Sequence record: NC_048053.1
Strand: one strand, 5' to 3'
DNA: 64,000 bases
The notes under the pieces were generated by a model. It saw only the letters and a program-made list of their open reading frames with translations. It ran no database searches and was not told where the DNA came from. How positions within the stretch are numbered: the first letter of the stretch is position 1; the number at the start of each line of letters is the position of its first letter. Of the stretch, positions 2,240-19,531 are shown one piece after another. A program made the position numbers and the translations under genes.

Positions 2240-5036
2240 AGTAGCGGCGGTTCAATTAAAACCGAAGCGTATTTTAGCCTTTGAAACTTTGCTGAACGAT
2301 GGCGAAGATGAAGGTGAGGATCTAACTTTCGTAGAAGAGAAAAAAGGTACGGACGTTTCTTTTCTACAGGAAGGTGAAGTAAATATTGTGGATCTCGTTG
2401 ACCTAGCGTTGAAAGATAAATCGCTGGTTCCGCGAGATCTTAAATTTGATGACAGTGCTTGTCCTCAAGCGAAAAACTTTTTGGAGTGGGTTACTTCTCC
2501 CCATTTTCTAAAGCAGACGCCTTATCTGGAACAGGCACTTATCGGCCTGCGTTTATTCGGTGAGATCTGTCCTCGTTGTTCTGATCTGGATTGGTTGCCT
2601 ACCGAAGCGCACGAACCGCAAGAAGGTTTGGCGGGAATTCGAAAACACCTTACCTTACTTGAACATGGCGAGTGTCCGAAATGCGGCGCTCGTCGCAGTG
2701 AGTTGATGCACTCAAAAGAACTTAACTTCTACAACGAACTTGCGGTGAACGCAGGGCAGCGTTGCGTGGGTGCTTCAACTCCAGTTATTACTGAACGTGG
2801 TTTGTTGCCGATTAGTCATATGTTTATCGGACACGATTCGCCGGGATTTCATCTGCCTCGCATGAACATGTGCGCAAATACCGGAAACAAACTGGATCGT
2901 GTTAAGCAACTTTATGTGAGTACCGAAGGCACAACTAAACGCGTTGTGTTGCAAAACGGTATGCACATTGATGCGACGCCTGATCATCCTCTTAGAACTG
3001 AAACAGGTTTTAAGCGCGTTAAGAAATTGACCACGGAAGATCATGTTCAAATTTGTTTGGGAACAAACGTGTGGGGCAAAAAAGTTACTTTGCCTATCAC
3101 GATTGAAGAGGCTGGCCTTGCTACTCGCGATGCCGCGCTGGAATTTCTCAGACGCAACTCACTACCGATAGAAAATGATAAACTTATTTACACGTCCACT
3201 GCGCCAAAAGCGCAAATGGCTTGGTGTATTTTGCTTAACGCTGGTTTTCTCCCTGTTGTCCGAAATGTTGGCAATGAGTATTCTGTTGTATTTGATCTTA
3301 ATTCTCAACCTATCTCAAAATCTCTCTTCATAAAGATTGATAGCATTGAGGATACTGATGATCAGATAACTTATGATTTGGTGATGGATGGAATGCCTCA
3401 GTTTATTGCTGGCGGCCTTCTGAATCATAACAGCGGTAAGAGTATCGTTGTTGCGATGTGTTCCACGTATCTTACACATATCATCTTAAAGTCTCAGTCT
3501 CCCACTGGTATTCTTGGAATCAGTAACACGACAATTCTTCACGGAACTTTCGTAGCGCTGACGCAATCACAAGCGAAAGATACTTTGTGGACACCGTACT
3601 TCAACATGATATCTGATAGTCCGTGGTTCCAAAAATATCACGAAGTTATCAGGCGACAAGAAAGAAAATACGGTATCGAAGTAATGAAGATCCGTGACAC
3701 GTTTGTGTTATACGGACACCGTAACTTGATTGTCTATCCGGCTGGCCCTGATGGTCGTATTCTCCGTGGACGCACACGAATTTTTGGCGCTCTCGATGAA
3801 ATCGCGTACTTCGATAACGATGCGGATAGTAAGAAAGTAAAAGTTAGTGCCGGGATGGTTTACGGCGCACTTGATCGATCTCTTGCAACCGTGCGTGCGG
3901 CAGAGGATAAACTGATTGCCGCAGGCTATGATCGCGCATTTACTGGATACATGTTTAACGTAAGTAGTCCGGTTCATGCGCGAGATAAAATCAATGAACT
4001 GATGCGAAGCAGTGTTGGCAGTACAAAACTATTAGGCATTCACGCGCCTACATGGAAAATGAACCCAACAATGCCGCGCAATAGTCAGTTTTTGGAAGAA
4101 GCGTTTCGTCGCGATCCAATTGGTGCTGCGCGAGATTACGGCGCGGAAGCTCCGTTGTCTGCGAATCCATTTATCACTCAGCCTGTTTTTATCACGAAAG
4201 CAATTCGCGAGAAAGGCAGAAACATGTGCGTGTACAGTCATAAGATTGTTCGCCACAAAGATGGTTCGCGGCAGCGTTACGGAACTCTGGTAAAAGCTGC
4301 ATCAACAACTCAACCTAGTATCATGGCGCTCGATGCTGGTTATAGTAATAACAGTTTCGCTATGGTAGTTGGAAGTCGAAATGCAGCGGGAATTATTAGC
4401 GTTGATTGTATCGCAGAAATAATTCCTTTGCCCGGTATTCCCCTTAACTATACGTTAATCTTCGATGAATTGTTGCTGCCTTTGTGTCAGAAACGAAACG
4501 TAAAAGTTTTGCTGGCTGACCAATGGAACAGTATTAAGCTGTTGCAGGATGCCAAACTAAAAGGCGGGATTGATGAAGCAGATAAATACAGTCTCAAGTA
4601 TCAAGATTTGTGGACGGTAAAAACTTTGCTGGAGTCAGAAATTCCTCGCTTGAGTTTGCCTCGTATGCAGCACGCGGAAACAATCTCAGATACGTTGCTT
4701 TATGATGGTGAAAACTATCCGTACTGTTTTGAAAATAAACCTACCGAACACCTTATCATGCAAATTCAAACGGTGCAGGACACCGGGAGAAGTGTAATTA
4801 AAAACATGGGCGCAACGGATGATAGTTGGCGTGCTATGGCGTTAATGGTTTGGGGATTCGAAAGCGGAAACTACGAAGAAGCATTAACCATTAGAGAAGA
4901 AGTTCGCGTTAATCGTGATCCGTCTCGACTTGGTGTTTCTAAAGGCCGTAGGAATACGGGAAGCGCCTCAAGTACCGCGCTGTCTAGTGGTAGTCCGTTA
5001 GGTTCTGTCAGGACGCGAAGAATAGGACAAAAATAA
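2223..5036 (+). CDS. terL: Terminase large subunit, intein-containing precursor
   Basis: Walker A GQR|SGKS split by intein, Walker B IFGALDE, RNase H-like nuclease IMALDAG; N-terminal CPRC/CPKC. Confidence 0.9.
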   Translation: MAKKPKVAAVQLKPKRILAFETLLNDGEDEGEDLTFVEEKKGTDVSFLQEGEVNIVDLVDLALKDKSLVPRDLKFDDSACPQAKNFLEWVTSPHFLKQTPYLEQALIGLRLFGEICPRCSDLDWLPTEAHEPQEGLAGIRKHLTLLEHGECPKCGARRSELMHSKELNFYNELAVNAGQRCVGASTPVITERGLLPISHMFIGHDSPGFHLPRMNMCANTGNKLDRVKQLYVSTEGTTKRVVLQNGMHIDATPDHPLRTETGFKRVKKLTTEDHVQICLGTNVWGKKVTLPITIEEAGLATRDAALEFLRRNSLPIENDKLIYTSTAPKAQMAWCILLNAGFLPVVRNVGNEYSVVFDLNSQPISKSLFIKIDSIEDTDDQITYDLVMDGMPQFIAGGLLNHNSGKSIVVAMCSTYLTHIILKSQSPTGILGISNTTILHGTFVALTQSQAKDTLWTPYFNMISDSPWFQKYHEVIRRQERKYGIEVMKIRDTFVLYGHRNLIVYPAGPDGRILRGRTRIFGALDEIAYFDNDADSKKVKVSAGMVYGALDRSLATVRAAEDKLIAAGYDRAFTGYMFNVSSPVHARDKINELMRSSVGSTKLLGIHAPTWKMNPTMPRNSQFLEEAFRRDPIGAARDYGAEAPLSANPFITQPVFITKAIREKGRNMCVYSHKIVRHKDGSRQRYGTLVKAASTTQPSIMALDAGYSNNSFAMVVGSRNAAGIISVDCIAEIIPLPGIPLNYTLIFDELLLPLCQKRNVKVLLADQWNSIKLLQDAKLKGGIDEADKYSLKYQDLWTVKTLLESEIPRLSLPRMQHAETISDTLLYDGENYPYCFENKPTEHLIMQIQTVQDTGRSVIKNMGATDDSWRAMALMVWGFESGNYEEALTIREEVRVNRDPSRLGVSKGRRNTGSASSTALSSGSPLGSVRTRRIGQK
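2763..3431 (+). mobile_element. Intein (223 aa) in the TerL P-loop, endonuclease domain apparently degenerate
   Basis: Cys1 (CVGAST), block B DATPDH, block F TYDL, terminal HN followed by Ser+1. Confidence 0.93.
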
Positions 5037-16406: not shown

Positions 16407-17282
16407 ATGGACTATTATTTTTCACTCGAAGAACTAAGAACGTGGGCGCGAATCTGTCTGATCGTGATTGTGTTTGGCTCTCTCTTTTACTCAGCTTACA
16501 GCAACTATATCCGCAATAAGTATGAGAAGATCGCGCGTCGTATGTTTAATGTCGGCGAACTTGCGGCAGGGCAAGTGTGGCAGCACTACCGCAACAAACG
16601 TTTCTACACAATTCAAGTTGTGAGTAATGTAATTGCCAATGGCAAAGAGTGGCCTCTCACTATCGTATATATGACAGCGAAAGGTTATGCTGTTTATAGT
16701 CGTCCGGCACATGAATTTATTCGCAAGTTTAAATTGGTGGATGAAGAATCTAACGCACGCGAAACTCCGACGCAGAATCTTCTGGCGTTAATGTCATATG
16801 TGACTGGAAGAGTATCGTTGCCTGAACCGGGATCGGAGTGGATTCGCGAATACGGAGTGCCCACAGGAAAAATTAACGCATTAGGCCATCTGGAAATGCG
16901 TTTAATGAAAGAAAAGATTGTGGTCGATACCGTAACTAACCTCAATCAACCGTGTCCGTATGTGAACTATACAGATCAAAACGGTTCGAAGAAAACCATT
17001 ACTCTGCATCACTTCCGGCAAAGTTATGTAAAAGAACAAGTGATTACTGATCGTGTATCACATTGCATTCTAAGCAATCAAAATGTGGAAGCGTTGAAAG
17101 AAGCCACGCTTCGCGATGGTGATCGTGTAACTGTAAATCAGGTAGTAGATGACGAATTTATTGTTGTTGACTACTGCGGTATCTCTGCGAAACTCGAATT
17201 TAATTCCACTAAAGGTTTTTACGTGGGCGCAGAATATGTTATTAACGAAGGCTGTCTGACGATAGGGAAAAATGATGAGTAA
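16407..17282 (+). CDS. Membrane-anchored protein with DUF1653-like domain(s)
   Basis: N-terminal TM ICLIVIVFGSLFYSAY; GQVWQHYRNKRFY..IVY..YSRPAHEF. Confidence 0.7.
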   Translation: MDYYFSLEELRTWARICLIVIVFGSLFYSAYSNYIRNKYEKIARRMFNVGELAAGQVWQHYRNKRFYTIQVVSNVIANGKEWPLTIVYMTAKGYAVYSRPAHEFIRKFKLVDEESNARETPTQNLLALMSYVTGRVSLPEPGSEWIREYGVPTGKINALGHLEMRLMKEKIVVDTVTNLNQPCPYVNYTDQNGSKKTITLHHFRQSYVKEQVITDRVSHCILSNQNVEALKEATLRDGDRVTVNQVVDDEFIVVDYCGISAKLEFNSTKGFYVGAEYVINEGCLTIGKNDE

Positions 17283-18027
17283 TTATCCGCAACTGGATCT
17301 CACCAAAGAGCGTGATTTCGAAATGTATGCCTATGACAATTACGATTGTCTTTATATGGGGCGCGTCGATGCAATAAAAGAAGAAGGGCGTCCTGTAAGC
17401 GATCCTAAGCGTACAGAAGATCAATGGCGTACAATTCCCGGTTGCGTTATTCAACTCGCAAATACAGCAATGGCTTTTCCTGCGCCGCTTTCGAAAAAAG
17501 CAAATTGGGTTGCTGCGGTAGATGAAAGCTGCTGGTTCATGCGTGGTGAGACAAACATCAATACGCTCAATTCCAAAATTTGGGATGAGTGGGCTGATGA
17601 GTCTGGTGAGTGTGGCCCGATTTATGGTGAAATGTGGCGGCGTTGGCCTGACCTCAAAGCATTCTTCGATTACACGCAACCTACTGGCGTGTGTCCGTCC
17701 CCTGATGTTCTTCGCATACGCAAAGAAATTCTGCGTATGCGTGCTGCTGGATACAAAGAAACTTTAATGAACGATGGTCGCATTCTGTTCGAAGGTGAAA
17801 TCGATCAGTTGTTGGAAGCATTAATTGCAATCAAAGAGCGTTCACGCTCGCGTCGTATTCGTGTTCAGGCGTTCAATCCTTCTTATTTGCATATGCAGGG
17901 ATTACCGCCGTGCCATACTGGTTTTGAATTTAACGTGTTGCCTTCGACTCTGTATGAGCAAACGATCATGCGTGCGGCACACGGCGAAGCATTCGAAGAA
18001 ACTTTGCACGTCAGCGTGTTCCTGCGT
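17272..18027 (+). CDS. thyA: Thymidylate synthase, exon 1
   Basis: IWDEW, GPIYG, SRRI, catalytic PPCH, ends ...FLR. Confidence 0.92.
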
Positions 18028-19153
18028 TCACTACATTGAGCGCCATTGGGTAGTAATGCCCTTTGCAAACTCCATTAAAACGGGAACCTCTCGAAAGAGA
18101 CAATCCGTTGCTAAATTTCCAAAGAATGATAATTTCAAACGGTAGACCTAGAAACCTATCGGAGAAAATATCATGACTGCGTATGTGTACAGGCTTGTCC
18201 ATAGACCTACTGGAAAGTTTTATTTGGGATCGACTGACGATATAGATTACAGGAAATACCAACACCTGAACAATCTTGAGAAAGGCCGTCATCCTAATTG
18301 CAGACTTCAAAAACTATTCGATAAAAAGAATGGCAAGAATTTTGAGTGGGAAGTGTTCCCTGTCAAAAACAGAAAGGCAGCATTTGAGCACGAACAAAAG
18401 CTGTTGGCAAAATACCACGACAACAAACTTATGTTGAATATTGGAATGCACACTGTTGGCGGAGATAACCTTACTCGAAATCCACGTAGGAAAGAAATCA
18501 TTGAGAAGATCGGACGCGGTGCAAAAGGCGTTTGGGATAATCTTAGTGATGAACAATATCAGGAACGTGTCGCCTTAGTTCAAGGTGAAAACAATCCGAT
18601 GTATGGAAAGACTCACACGAAAAAGGTTAAGAAAAAACTTAGCGAATTCCACAAAGGGAATACTTATGCTCTAGGATGCAAGCGCTCCGAAGAGACTAAG
18701 AAAAAGTTAAGTGAGAGTGCATCGAAACGAACCGGAAAGAAAAATGCTTTCTACGGCAAGAATCATTCCGAAGAGGCCAAAGCGAGAATGCGCGAGGCAG
18801 CACTAGCGCGAGATCCTTTAGATAAAGCTCAAAGAAAAGATATCAGTGTGGATGGAAAAGTTTTTATTTCTCTTAACGAGGCTTCGCGTCAGTTAGGAAT
18901 TCCAGCACCAACTTTGAGTTACCGATGCAAAAGTAAAAACCCTAAATACGCAAATGTTTTCTATTTGGAATAAATGCCCAACGACTATCGAAAGCACGAT
19001 TAATTTCGGAAGCGAGTAGAGTAGGATGCAAGCTAATGGCATTCGAAATGTGGAGAGTCCTCGAAAGAGGATTGTGATATAGTCTGATCTGCATAGTGAT
19101 ATGCAGCGGTCGAAAGACGGCGAGGAAAGTTGCGCTTCCTTGTGAACATAATG
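18028..19153 (+). mobile_element. Group I self-splicing intron (1126 nt, IA2-like)
   Basis: P1 GCGU|UCA-cuacau-UGAGCGC with U.G at the splice site; Q CAATCCGTTGC; P7 GACTA/TAGTC; P3 CTCCA/TGGAG; terminal G 19153; splicing restores LRSSDTLLGLPFN. Confidence 0.93.
18173..18973 (+). CDS. Intron-encoded GIY-YIG homing endonuclease, I-BmoI/I-TevI-like
   Basis: YVYRL..FYLGST, conserved R/E/N, NUMOD3-type repeats (GENNPMYGKTH, KRSEETKKKLS, FYGKNHSEE), C-terminal EASRQL HTH. Confidence 0.93.
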   Translation: MTAYVYRLVHRPTGKFYLGSTDDIDYRKYQHLNNLEKGRHPNCRLQKLFDKKNGKNFEWEVFPVKNRKAAFEHEQKLLAKYHDNKLMLNIGMHTVGGDNLTRNPRRKEIIEKIGRGAKGVWDNLSDEQYQERVALVQGENNPMYGKTHTKKVKKKLSEFHKGNTYALGCKRSEETKKKLSESASKRTGKKNAFYGKNHSEEAKARMREAALARDPLDKAQRKDISVDGKVFISLNEASRQLGIPAPTLSYRCKSKNPKYANVFYLE

Positions 19154-19504
19154 TCAAGTGACACCCTATTAGGCTTGCCGTTTAATGTTATCGGCTACTG
19201 TTCTATCTTCCATTTGTTCGCAAAATATTGCGGCCTGAATATCGGTAGCTTTACGATTGACAGCACCAATACGCATGTTTATGAACATCACTGGACGGCG
19301 CTTGATAAGCAACGTGAACAATTCGAAGAACTGGTGGCAGAAGTTCGTAGCACTGGTAATCCGATGCAGTATCCGATCATGCGAATCGATCCGAAAATTT
19401 TTGCACTGGAACCGAAAGAACTTCTCGATTCAATCAGCGTAGAAATGTTCAATCTGGAAGGTTACAATCCGAAAGGTAAGATTACCGGGCGCGTAACCAA
19501 ATAA
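19154..19504 (+). CDS. thyA: Thymidylate synthase, exon 2
   Basis: SSDTLLGLPFN, THVYEHH; spliced CDS 368 aa. Confidence 0.92.
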   Translation, partial: SSDTLLGLPFNVIGYCSIFHLFAKYCGLNIGSFTIDSTNTHVYEHHWTALDKQREQFEELVAEVRSTGNPMQYPIMRIDPKIFALEPKELLDSISVEMFNLEGYNPKGKITGRVTK

Positions 19505-19509
19505 GATAT

Positions 19510-19531
19510 GGCGGCCTTGTGCCGCCTTTTT
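19510..19531 (+). terminator. Intrinsic terminator
   Basis: GGCGGC-CTTGT-GCCGCC-TTTTT. Confidence 0.8.

Follow-up and report, generated by a model that had tools for sequence, protein, structure and literature searches.

The locus considered here lies in a stretch of 64,000 nucleotides of the sequence record NC_048053.1 (hereafter the window), in which two genes annotated as thymidylate synthase are separated by a third gene, for an endonuclease. The question is whether these are three neighbouring genes, or whether a single thymidylate synthase gene (thyA) has been split by an inserted element, and if so, of which kind and descent. The window belongs to Dickeya phage vB_DsoM_JA29 (JA29; MH460461/NC_048053), a 253-kb jumbo phage of the genus Salmondvirus with Dickeya solani as its host; positions 17272-19504 are 100% identical to that genome, with equal coordinates. 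In GenBank, JA29_025 and JA29_027 are each named "putative thymidylate synthase" and JA29_026, between them, is labelled "putative GIY-YIG family homing endonuclease"; the intron is not annotated, and the words intron, thymidylate, endonuclease and GIY-YIG are all absent from the paper describing JA29 (PMC6143709). It appears that thyA of JA29 very probably harbours an intact, mobile group I intron, which encodes a GIY-YIG homing endonuclease and occupies the insertion site known from I-BmoI (Table 1). This corrects the published annotation: two "thymidylate synthase" fragments and an endonuclease become a single gene with a mobile intron. The intron is ordinary in kind and had not been annotated as such, and it offers a useful natural example and a test system.

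The boundaries of the insertion can be read from uninterrupted alleles. The close relatives JA11, JA13 and JA33, all isolated on Dickeya solani, carry an uninterrupted thyA, which was confirmed base for base in JA11 and JA13. The two exons of JA29, which were searched and compared singly rather than as a joined gene, are collinear with the first 753 and the last 351 nucleotides (nt) of the JA13/JA11 gene. Since their lengths add up to 1104 nt, exactly the length of that gene, the intron comprises the 1126 nt between them. A 3-nt ambiguity (TCA) is inherent in the junction and was settled by the rules for group I introns, by which a U precedes the 5' splice site and the intron closes with a G.

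The intron follows the codon of a conserved active-site Arg, within the motif R|S-x-D. In the td gene of phage T4 exon 1 ends in ...QRSVDVFLG and exon 2 starts with LPFN, which places the td site 7 codons (21 nt) downstream of the JA29 site. An earlier note on this DNA, made from the letters alone, had placed the insertion between Arg and Ser, 21 nt upstream of the td position and thus at the site of I-BmoI and not of td, and had pointed to a CTGCG motif (of the form CNNNG) in exon 1 with a G at position -2; the JA13/JA11 alleles, the T4 td comparison and the mapping of the junction bear out all of this. Exon 1 ends in CGT at the same Arg in 16 of the 16 further thyA introns that were checked at the nucleotide level, which derive from phiKZ-like Pseudomonas phages, the Bacillus phages SPbetaL1 and LY2, Bacillus prophages, Gottfriedia, Clostridia, Deinococcus and metagenomic contigs. 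By translation, the same Arg|Ser junction was found in Erwinia phage Joad and Bacillus phage Bobb. A large family of thyA introns shares the I-BmoI insertion site, with members in phages and prophages of Bacillus, in Clostridia and Deinococcus, and in jumbo phages infecting Pseudomonas, Erwinia and Dickeya.

Homology to 14 other thyA introns at the same site extends over the whole core, and the two halves of the JA29 intron, on either side of its open reading frame (ORF), align with these homologues throughout P1-P6 and P7-P9.2. RNAalifold detected compensatory changes in 17 of the 23 predicted pairs of the 5' half and in 28 of the 40 of the 3' half, distributed over P1, P2, P4, P5, P7, P7.2, P8, P9, P9.1 and P9.2; for the long-range P3 pairing, inspection by eye was the sole basis. 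In P1, the exon bases GCGU (18024-18027) pair with the guide bases GCGC (18040-18043), with a U18027-G18040 wobble at the 5' splice site. This helix of 6 bp is conserved and covarying across 13 homologues: at its fourth pair in the Bacillus intron, exon C and guide G have changed together (G-C to C-G). The exon of JA29 differs from that of JA13/JA11 at -1, -3 and -4, which are precisely bases that pair in P1. The sequence UUGA (18036-18039) is able to form P10 with the four nucleotides that open exon 2, with covariation judged by eye in alignments A2 and A3. The JA29 intron has the P1 U-G wobble, the terminal G and the covarying catalytic core by which group I introns are recognised. We infer that its RNA would fold into P1-P9 and splice itself out, restoring thyA and a ThyA protein of 367 amino acids.

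The ORF within the intron ends 6 nt before the 5' strand of P7 and therefore lies in the P6 loop. The protein that it encodes shows a GIY-YIG domain (PF01541, 25.2 bits against a cut-off of 22.6), three stretches of NUMOD3 (PF07460, 53.9 bits) and an I-TevI-type helix-turn-helix DNA-binding domain (PF20987, 28.4 bits against a cut-off of 27). Both solved domain structures of I-TevI match it, at the N- and the C-terminus, the latter with residues 179-256 on 1i3j. At the I-BmoI positions the enzyme keeps Y6, Y17, S20, R27, H31, N42 and E74, with N89 as the invariant Asn; it is thus encoded by a full-length ORF with intact catalytic residues. CxxC and CxC, the zinc-finger motifs that I-TevI has at 151 and 164, are absent from the JA29 endonuclease. 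It is the only GIY-YIG gene in JA29. A scan for sigma-70 promoters found none upstream of the endonuclease gene, and such sites were rarer than in shuffled sequence, a result that is uninformative for a jumbo phage.

Table 1. Features of the thyA locus in the window, and loci of free-standing relatives of the endonuclease
Feature	Position	Strand	Basis
thyA exon 1, 251 codons, ends Leu-Arg (CTG CGT)	17275..18027	+	Pfam PF00303 E=4.8e-33, profile 3-169
CTGCG, positions -6 to -2; G18026 is -2; predicted cleavage motif	18022..18026	+	read from sequence
Group I intron (IA2-like), 1126 nt	18028..19153	+	intronless alleles, partial Rfam matches, homologues
Internal guide sequence, pairs with 18024-18029 as P1	18038..18043	+	RNAalifold, alignment A2 columns 9-14/24-29
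GGAG, putative ribosome-binding site, 8 nt upstream of endonuclease ATG	18161..18164	+	read from sequence
Homing endonuclease gene, 266 amino acids, P6 loop	18173..18973	+	Pfam PF01541, PF07460, PF20987; I-TevI domain structures
P7 5' strand (AACGACTA), immediately 3' of ORF stop codon	18980..18987	+	alignment A3 columns 38-42/178-182
P8 hairpin	19058..19071	+	RNAalifold pairs with compensatory changes
P7 3' strand (GATATAGTC)	19076..19084	+	RNAalifold and position mapping
P9 hairpin	19089..19106	+	RNAalifold and Rfam alignment
Terminal intron G (omega G); preceding base T, not G	19153	+	read from sequence
thyA exon 2, 116 codons and stop, starts Ser-Ser-Asp...Gly-Leu-Pro-Phe-Asn	19154..19504	+	PF00303 E=1.6e-15, profile 169-264
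Terminator-like hairpin and T run after thyA stop	19510..19526	+	consensus scan, pattern match only
Free-standing endonuclease relatives	L011:2501-3277, L016:2501-3253, L013:1390-2115, L007:2001-2804, L105:1801-2592		

Evidence for recent movement of the intron comes from copies in metagenomes. The 90% identity cluster of the JA29 endonuclease has two metagenomic members, one of which, L109, is a 218-kb contig syntenic with JA29. Between JA29 and L109 the nucleotide identity is 99.3% in the 5' core of the intron, 91.6% in the endonuclease gene and 95.6% in the 3' core, as compared to 74.0% in thyA exon 1, 70.4% in exon 2 and 57-66% in five neighbouring genes. The tract of high identity starts at -12 in exon 1 and is gone by +9 in exon 2, a pattern that fits homing with a short upstream co-conversion tract. 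The ThyA protein encoded by the two exons of JA29 is 77% and 69% identical to that of L109, as against 94% and 98% for the intronless JA13, and the thyA genes of JA13 and JA11, without the intron, are 86-91% identical to that of JA29. Codons with synonymous differences only amount to 13% in the endonuclease gene between JA29 and L109, whereas in thyA exon 2 they amount to 29% between JA29 and L109 and to 25% between JA29 and JA13. The common ancestor of the two introns is therefore younger than the split between JA29 and JA13, and this requires lateral transfer between diverged phages. A third copy of the intron, with about 94% identity, was found on an 87-kb contig from a metatranscriptome library. 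In more distant relatives (L089-L091, 51-53% identity) the divergence of ThyA about equals that of the endonuclease, which fits old residence. With 92-99% identity in the intron and 70-74% in the gene around it, the JA29-L109 pair provides a clean natural example of recent homing between diverged phages.

The position of the enzyme among its relatives was studied in two trees. In a tree of 117 rows with the T4 Seg proteins as its root, I-TevI clusters with free-standing enzymes encoded next to td. An 87-row clade (94 in the Shimodaira-Hasegawa-like approximate likelihood ratio test, SH-aLRT) unites a Firmicute, Deinococcus and Bacillus-phage group, including the I-BmoI type, with a 47-row group (97) that holds JA29, OMKO1, Joad, phiKT1028 and metagenomic proteins. 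In a tree of 49 rows the JA29 clade comprises 21 rows (support 90/94), namely the thyA-intron enzymes of Pseudomonas, Erwinia and Vibrio jumbo phages together with those of metagenomic giant-phage contigs; the clade of I-TevI and the zinc-finger enzymes is supported at 93/91, and the base of the tree is a polytomy. The approximately unbiased (AU) test rejected neither a union of the JA29 and I-TevI clades (p=0.44) nor a union of the JA29 clade with the I-BmoI side that leaves I-TevI outside (p=0.54), the latter having the slightly best likelihood. A tree of the intron core, made from the 5' and 3' parts without the ORF, is poorly resolved, with just one starred branch, and was used for nearest neighbours only. 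A place of the JA29 enzyme inside the I-TevI/zinc-finger clade was rejected (AU p=0.006), and this value, the shift of the insertion site by 21 nt and the absent zinc finger set it apart from the I-TevI lineage. A grouping with the T4 Seg proteins was not seen in the trees, so that neither of the two groupings named in the earlier note as counting against its reading was obtained.

By homology to I-BmoI and I-TevI, the endonuclease is expected to act as a monomer, the C-terminal NUMOD3/helix-turn-helix part of which would bind the codons of thyA exon 2 just downstream of the site. The tethered N-terminal nuclease would then nick intronless alleles within the Arg codon, some bases upstream, the bottom strand first and the top strand second, at an NNNNG sequence with G-2 as the presumed key base. 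Repair of the break from an intron-bearing genome would copy the intron, together with a few exon bases, into the cut allele. After insertion the base at -2 is a T, and the carrier allele should therefore be immune; an identical G-2T change is what keeps the intron-containing allele from being cut by I-BmoI (PMC3161791). The CTGCG of the JA29 exon lies in the register of the motif at which I-BmoI cleaves, GCCCG (NNNNG), and of the CNNNG that is its homologue in I-TevI (PMC12774661, PMC5009752). By itself a CNNNG is statistically unremarkable, being expected by chance at 1 position in 16, and its G at -2 is present because the Arg codon dictates that base. At the site, the intronless alleles of JA13 and JA11 read CTC AGA; with C-6 and G-2 retained and 86% identity to JA29 in the initial 50 nt of exon 2, these alleles could plausibly serve as targets in nature.

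The likeliest alternative concerns the cleavage step: the enzyme could be I-TevI-like in having a strict need for CNNNG, reading the CTGCG or CTCAG of Salmondvirus thyA. Both C-6 and G-2 are indeed found in the exon of JA29 and in that of JA13/JA11, and residues 35-38 of the enzyme (LEKG) are as in I-TevI and not as in I-BmoI. A sister relation of the JA29 clade to the I-TevI clade, as described above, would also agree with such a preference, although the best-scoring tree has the I-TevI group outside. On the other hand, position 39 is an Arg as in I-BmoI, and a zinc finger that could act as distance determinant is lacking. Moreover, the near-identical enzyme of L109 differs at 9 residues in the stretch 22-39 and has the same exon motif. 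We therefore consider a strict CNNNG requirement possible but rather unlikely. The 9 changes (window 18236-18291; L109:4064-4119) are part of a total of 21 amino-acid differences between the two endonucleases, and CTGCG is common to both loci despite them.

If the endonuclease cuts as predicted, a use in competition can be envisaged. A role as a weapon against co-infecting intronless phages is plausible, and there is a precedent for it (PMC11620839). A more specific scenario would be that the intron spreads actively between jumbo phages that have diverged at the level of genera, that it serves as a device for competition in mixed infections by cutting intronless thyA in Salmondvirus phages that occur alongside it (JA11, JA13 and JA33), and that the changes clustered in residues 22-39, between copies with an overall identity of 92%, represent a retuning of motif preference still under way in nature; this we put forward as a tentative and somewhat doubtful proposal. 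JA11, JA13 and JA29 are all water isolates from the UK, and with JA29 (with intron) and JA11/JA13 (without) a same-host pair is at hand in which homing, co-conversion and intron-mediated competition are measurable.

Some observations weigh against the reading of the locus as a splicing, actively homing intron. Cleavage site, strand order and the need for G-2 are extrapolated from an enzyme with 38% identity, and the alpha-helix-1/loop region of the JA29 enzyme differs from that of I-TevI as well as from that of I-BmoI; the region ('Block 2') sets the cleavage-motif preference in these two enzymes (PMC12774661). The two intron halves score only 23.6 and 28.7 bits against the group I model of Rfam (RF00028), below the cut-off of 50, as expected since the 801-nt ORF splits the model; homologues reach 101.6 bits (the ORF-less intron L014, see below), 69.4 bits (OMKO1) and 50.7 bits (SPbetaL1). 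At the gathering threshold, Rfam returned no RNA family in the whole window. Contigs that contain the locus in metatranscriptome libraries of a 2024 study (X1, X2 and X5), which reach 87 kb and stem from a JA29-like phage, carry the unspliced intron, and the exon-exon joint was not seen in these contig data, which proves nothing either way; the contigs probably represent phage DNA present in the RNA libraries. Finally, the enrichment of exon differences between JA29 and JA13 near the site (11 of 48 positions against a background of 12%, p=0.03) is modest. The co-conversion tract is thus weakly visible against JA13, and clear against L109.

All close relatives of the endonuclease with visible context are tied to thyA. 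Enzymes that are encoded in an intron splitting thyA were found in phiKZ-like Pseudomonas phages (41% identity), the Bacillus phages SPbetaL1, LY2 and Bobb, Erwinia phages Joad and RisingSun, Vibrio phage phiKT1028, Gottfriedia, Clostridium and Deinococcus, and on metagenomic contigs of up to 259 kb (51-53% identity). Except in two cases, all of these have a confirmed Arg|Ser junction: in phiKT1028 the exon 2 motif was not found by pattern search and the exact junction was not placed, and in the Clostridium locus L018 exon 2 was not found. Free-standing relatives are located beside an intact thyA or td in Acinetobacter phages 133 and Ac42, Deinococcus caeni, and one metagenome-assembled genome (MAG) each of Methylophilaceae and Terrimicrobiaceae. 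The free-standing copy of D. caeni is sister (100/99) to the intron-encoded copy of Deinococcus, and switches between the intron-borne and the free-standing state therefore seem to occur. In L089, a jumbo-phage contig from a metagenome with a 51%-identical intron, a DNA methylase gene about 1.7 kb downstream (L089:5684-6807) gives Pfam matches to Hint/intein-splicing domains, and would be a second self-splicing element nearby.

The endonuclease genes of several relatives are degenerate. In Gottfriedia acidiceleris (L009), Bacillus sp. FJAT-25509 (L015) and Clostridium nigeriense (L019) the intron endonuclease genes contain stops or frameshifts (within 2400-3300 of each locus), while their close relatives are intact, and the broken genes look like snapshots of the decay cycle of homing endonucleases. 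A Bacillales MAG (L014) has an ORF-less intron of 277 nt at the same thyA site (L014:3744-4020); it also holds a C-terminal endonuclease fragment upstream of thyA exon 1 (L014:2501-3007). By analogy with these loci, the JA29 intron might be a resident relic, which splices but has an endonuclease that is no longer an active homing enzyme and is decaying or has assumed another role, such as help in splicing. This is very unlikely for JA29, where the ORF is full-length with all catalytic residues and a good putative ribosome-binding site, and where the intron is far younger than the divergence of the surrounding genes, which requires recent mobility. In addition, the codons in which the endonuclease genes of JA29 and L109 differ are more often synonymous-only (34) than nonsynonymous (21), an excess that fits a gene still under selection.

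The ORF has not kept one place within the intron. In JA29 and ten other family members that were checked it precedes the 5' strand of P7 and occupies the P6 loop, the arrangement seen in T4 td, whereas the I-BmoI-type ORF lies between the 5' and 3' strands of P7, i.e. in P8, and in OMKO1 the entire core P1-P9 precedes the ORF. Homologous introns at one site thus use three ORF loops (L004:1749-2871, L005:1726-2815 and window 18028-19153), which implies relocation of the ORF or repeated invasion by ORFs. The family, whose ORFs occupy P6, P8 or P9 and whose alpha-1/loop varies, constitutes a set of natural variants for work on GIY-YIG specificity. The terminator-like hairpin behind thyA is GC-rich and also palindromic on the minus strand.

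In the comparison with I-BmoI, the enzyme of the thyA intron of Bacillus mojavensis, stand-ins were used: the genome scan returned no B. mojavensis locus, and we took as "I-BmoI-type" two near-identical copies from SPbeta-type phages and prophages. One is the intron ORF of Bacillus phage SPbetaL1, with 266 codons and agreement at 15 of the 15 residues of I-BmoI that PMC2853131 names; the other is P0081 from a Bacillus chromosome, the representative of its cluster, with agreement at 13. Their start codons are ATT (SPbetaL1, L004:1989-1991) or ATA (Bacillus chromosome, L093:3001-3003), neither of them one of ATG, GTG and TTG, as opposed to ATG in JA29, and some annotations therefore call only a C-terminal product of 196-202 amino acids. 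Like the JA29 element, the I-BmoI type is inserted in thyA after the Arg codon (CGT|) in a homologous group I core P1-P9, encodes a GIY-YIG enzyme of 266 amino acids that carries NUMOD3 repeats and a C-terminal helix-turn-helix and lacks a zinc finger, and turns the target G-2 into a T in the intron-bearing allele. It differs in the exon motif (GCCCG instead of CTGCG) and in its Bacillus host, as opposed to a jumbo phage of a Gram-negative plant pathogen. That the JA29 element is the I-BmoI intron and endonuclease itself or a near descendant, moved over a long range with a chromosome or prophage of Bacillus at one end and a phage of a Gram-negative host at the other, is suggested by the same site, length, domain order and short motifs, but is highly improbable given that identity is just 38% for the protein (full-length comparison with P0081, E=9e-52) and about 58-59% for the intron core, that JA29 belongs to the 21-row clade of Gram-negative-phage and metagenome enzymes apart from the Bacillus I-BmoI clade, that the ORF lies in P6 instead of P8, and that the ThyA proteins of the two hosts are very different.

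The earlier note had correctly read the ORF of 266 amino acids, and the I-BmoI motifs that it named are present in both the SPbetaL1 intron ORF and P0081. Its description of the nuclease as I-BmoI-like holds with regard to architecture, pairwise identity (38%, against 25% to I-TevI, E=1e-18) and the shared site, but the enzyme falls outside the I-BmoI clade and its ORF is in P6; since the sister relation among the clades is a polytomy, "I-BmoI-like" is best understood in this restricted sense. Likewise, the family does occur both in Firmicute chromosomes and in phages of Gram-negative hosts, as had been proposed, but the separate clade and the different ORF loop give no sign of a direct transfer from a Firmicute to a Dickeya phage. 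The intron/endonuclease family is an old one of wide distribution, and the recent transfer that these sequences demonstrate is the one between jumbo phages.

The T4 td intron shares with that of JA29 a thymidylate synthase host gene, an IA2-type core and an endonuclease ORF in the P6 region, and I-TevI is a GIY-YIG enzyme whose C-terminal DNA-binding domain is of the type found in JA29; the JA29 enzyme is predicted to cut at the homologous Arg codon. The td insertion, however, is located after the Gly of FLG, and I-TevI possesses a zinc finger and one NUMOD3-like element, with a core identity of about 53%. JA29 combines the site of I-BmoI with the ORF position of I-TevI. More similar in context are the phiKZ-like Pseudomonas phages (OMKO1, SL2, PA02 and others), Erwinia phages Joad and RisingSun, and Vibrio phage phiKT1028, which like JA29 are jumbo phages of Gram-negative hosts and in GenBank likewise show only a split thymidylate synthase and an endonuclease at these loci. 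The introns of OMKO1 and Joad share the Arg|Ser site with JA29, and their enzymes belong to the same clade with 35-41% identity, but the OMKO1 ORF follows P9 and these phages are of other genera. Finally, the gp210 protein of PhiPA3 is an intron-encoded homing endonuclease of a jumbo phage, which interferes with a co-infecting related phage that lacks the intron (PMC11620839); it resides in a different host gene, in a nucleus-forming phage of the Chimalliviridae, and is likened to the JA29 enzyme by its role and not by its enzyme family.

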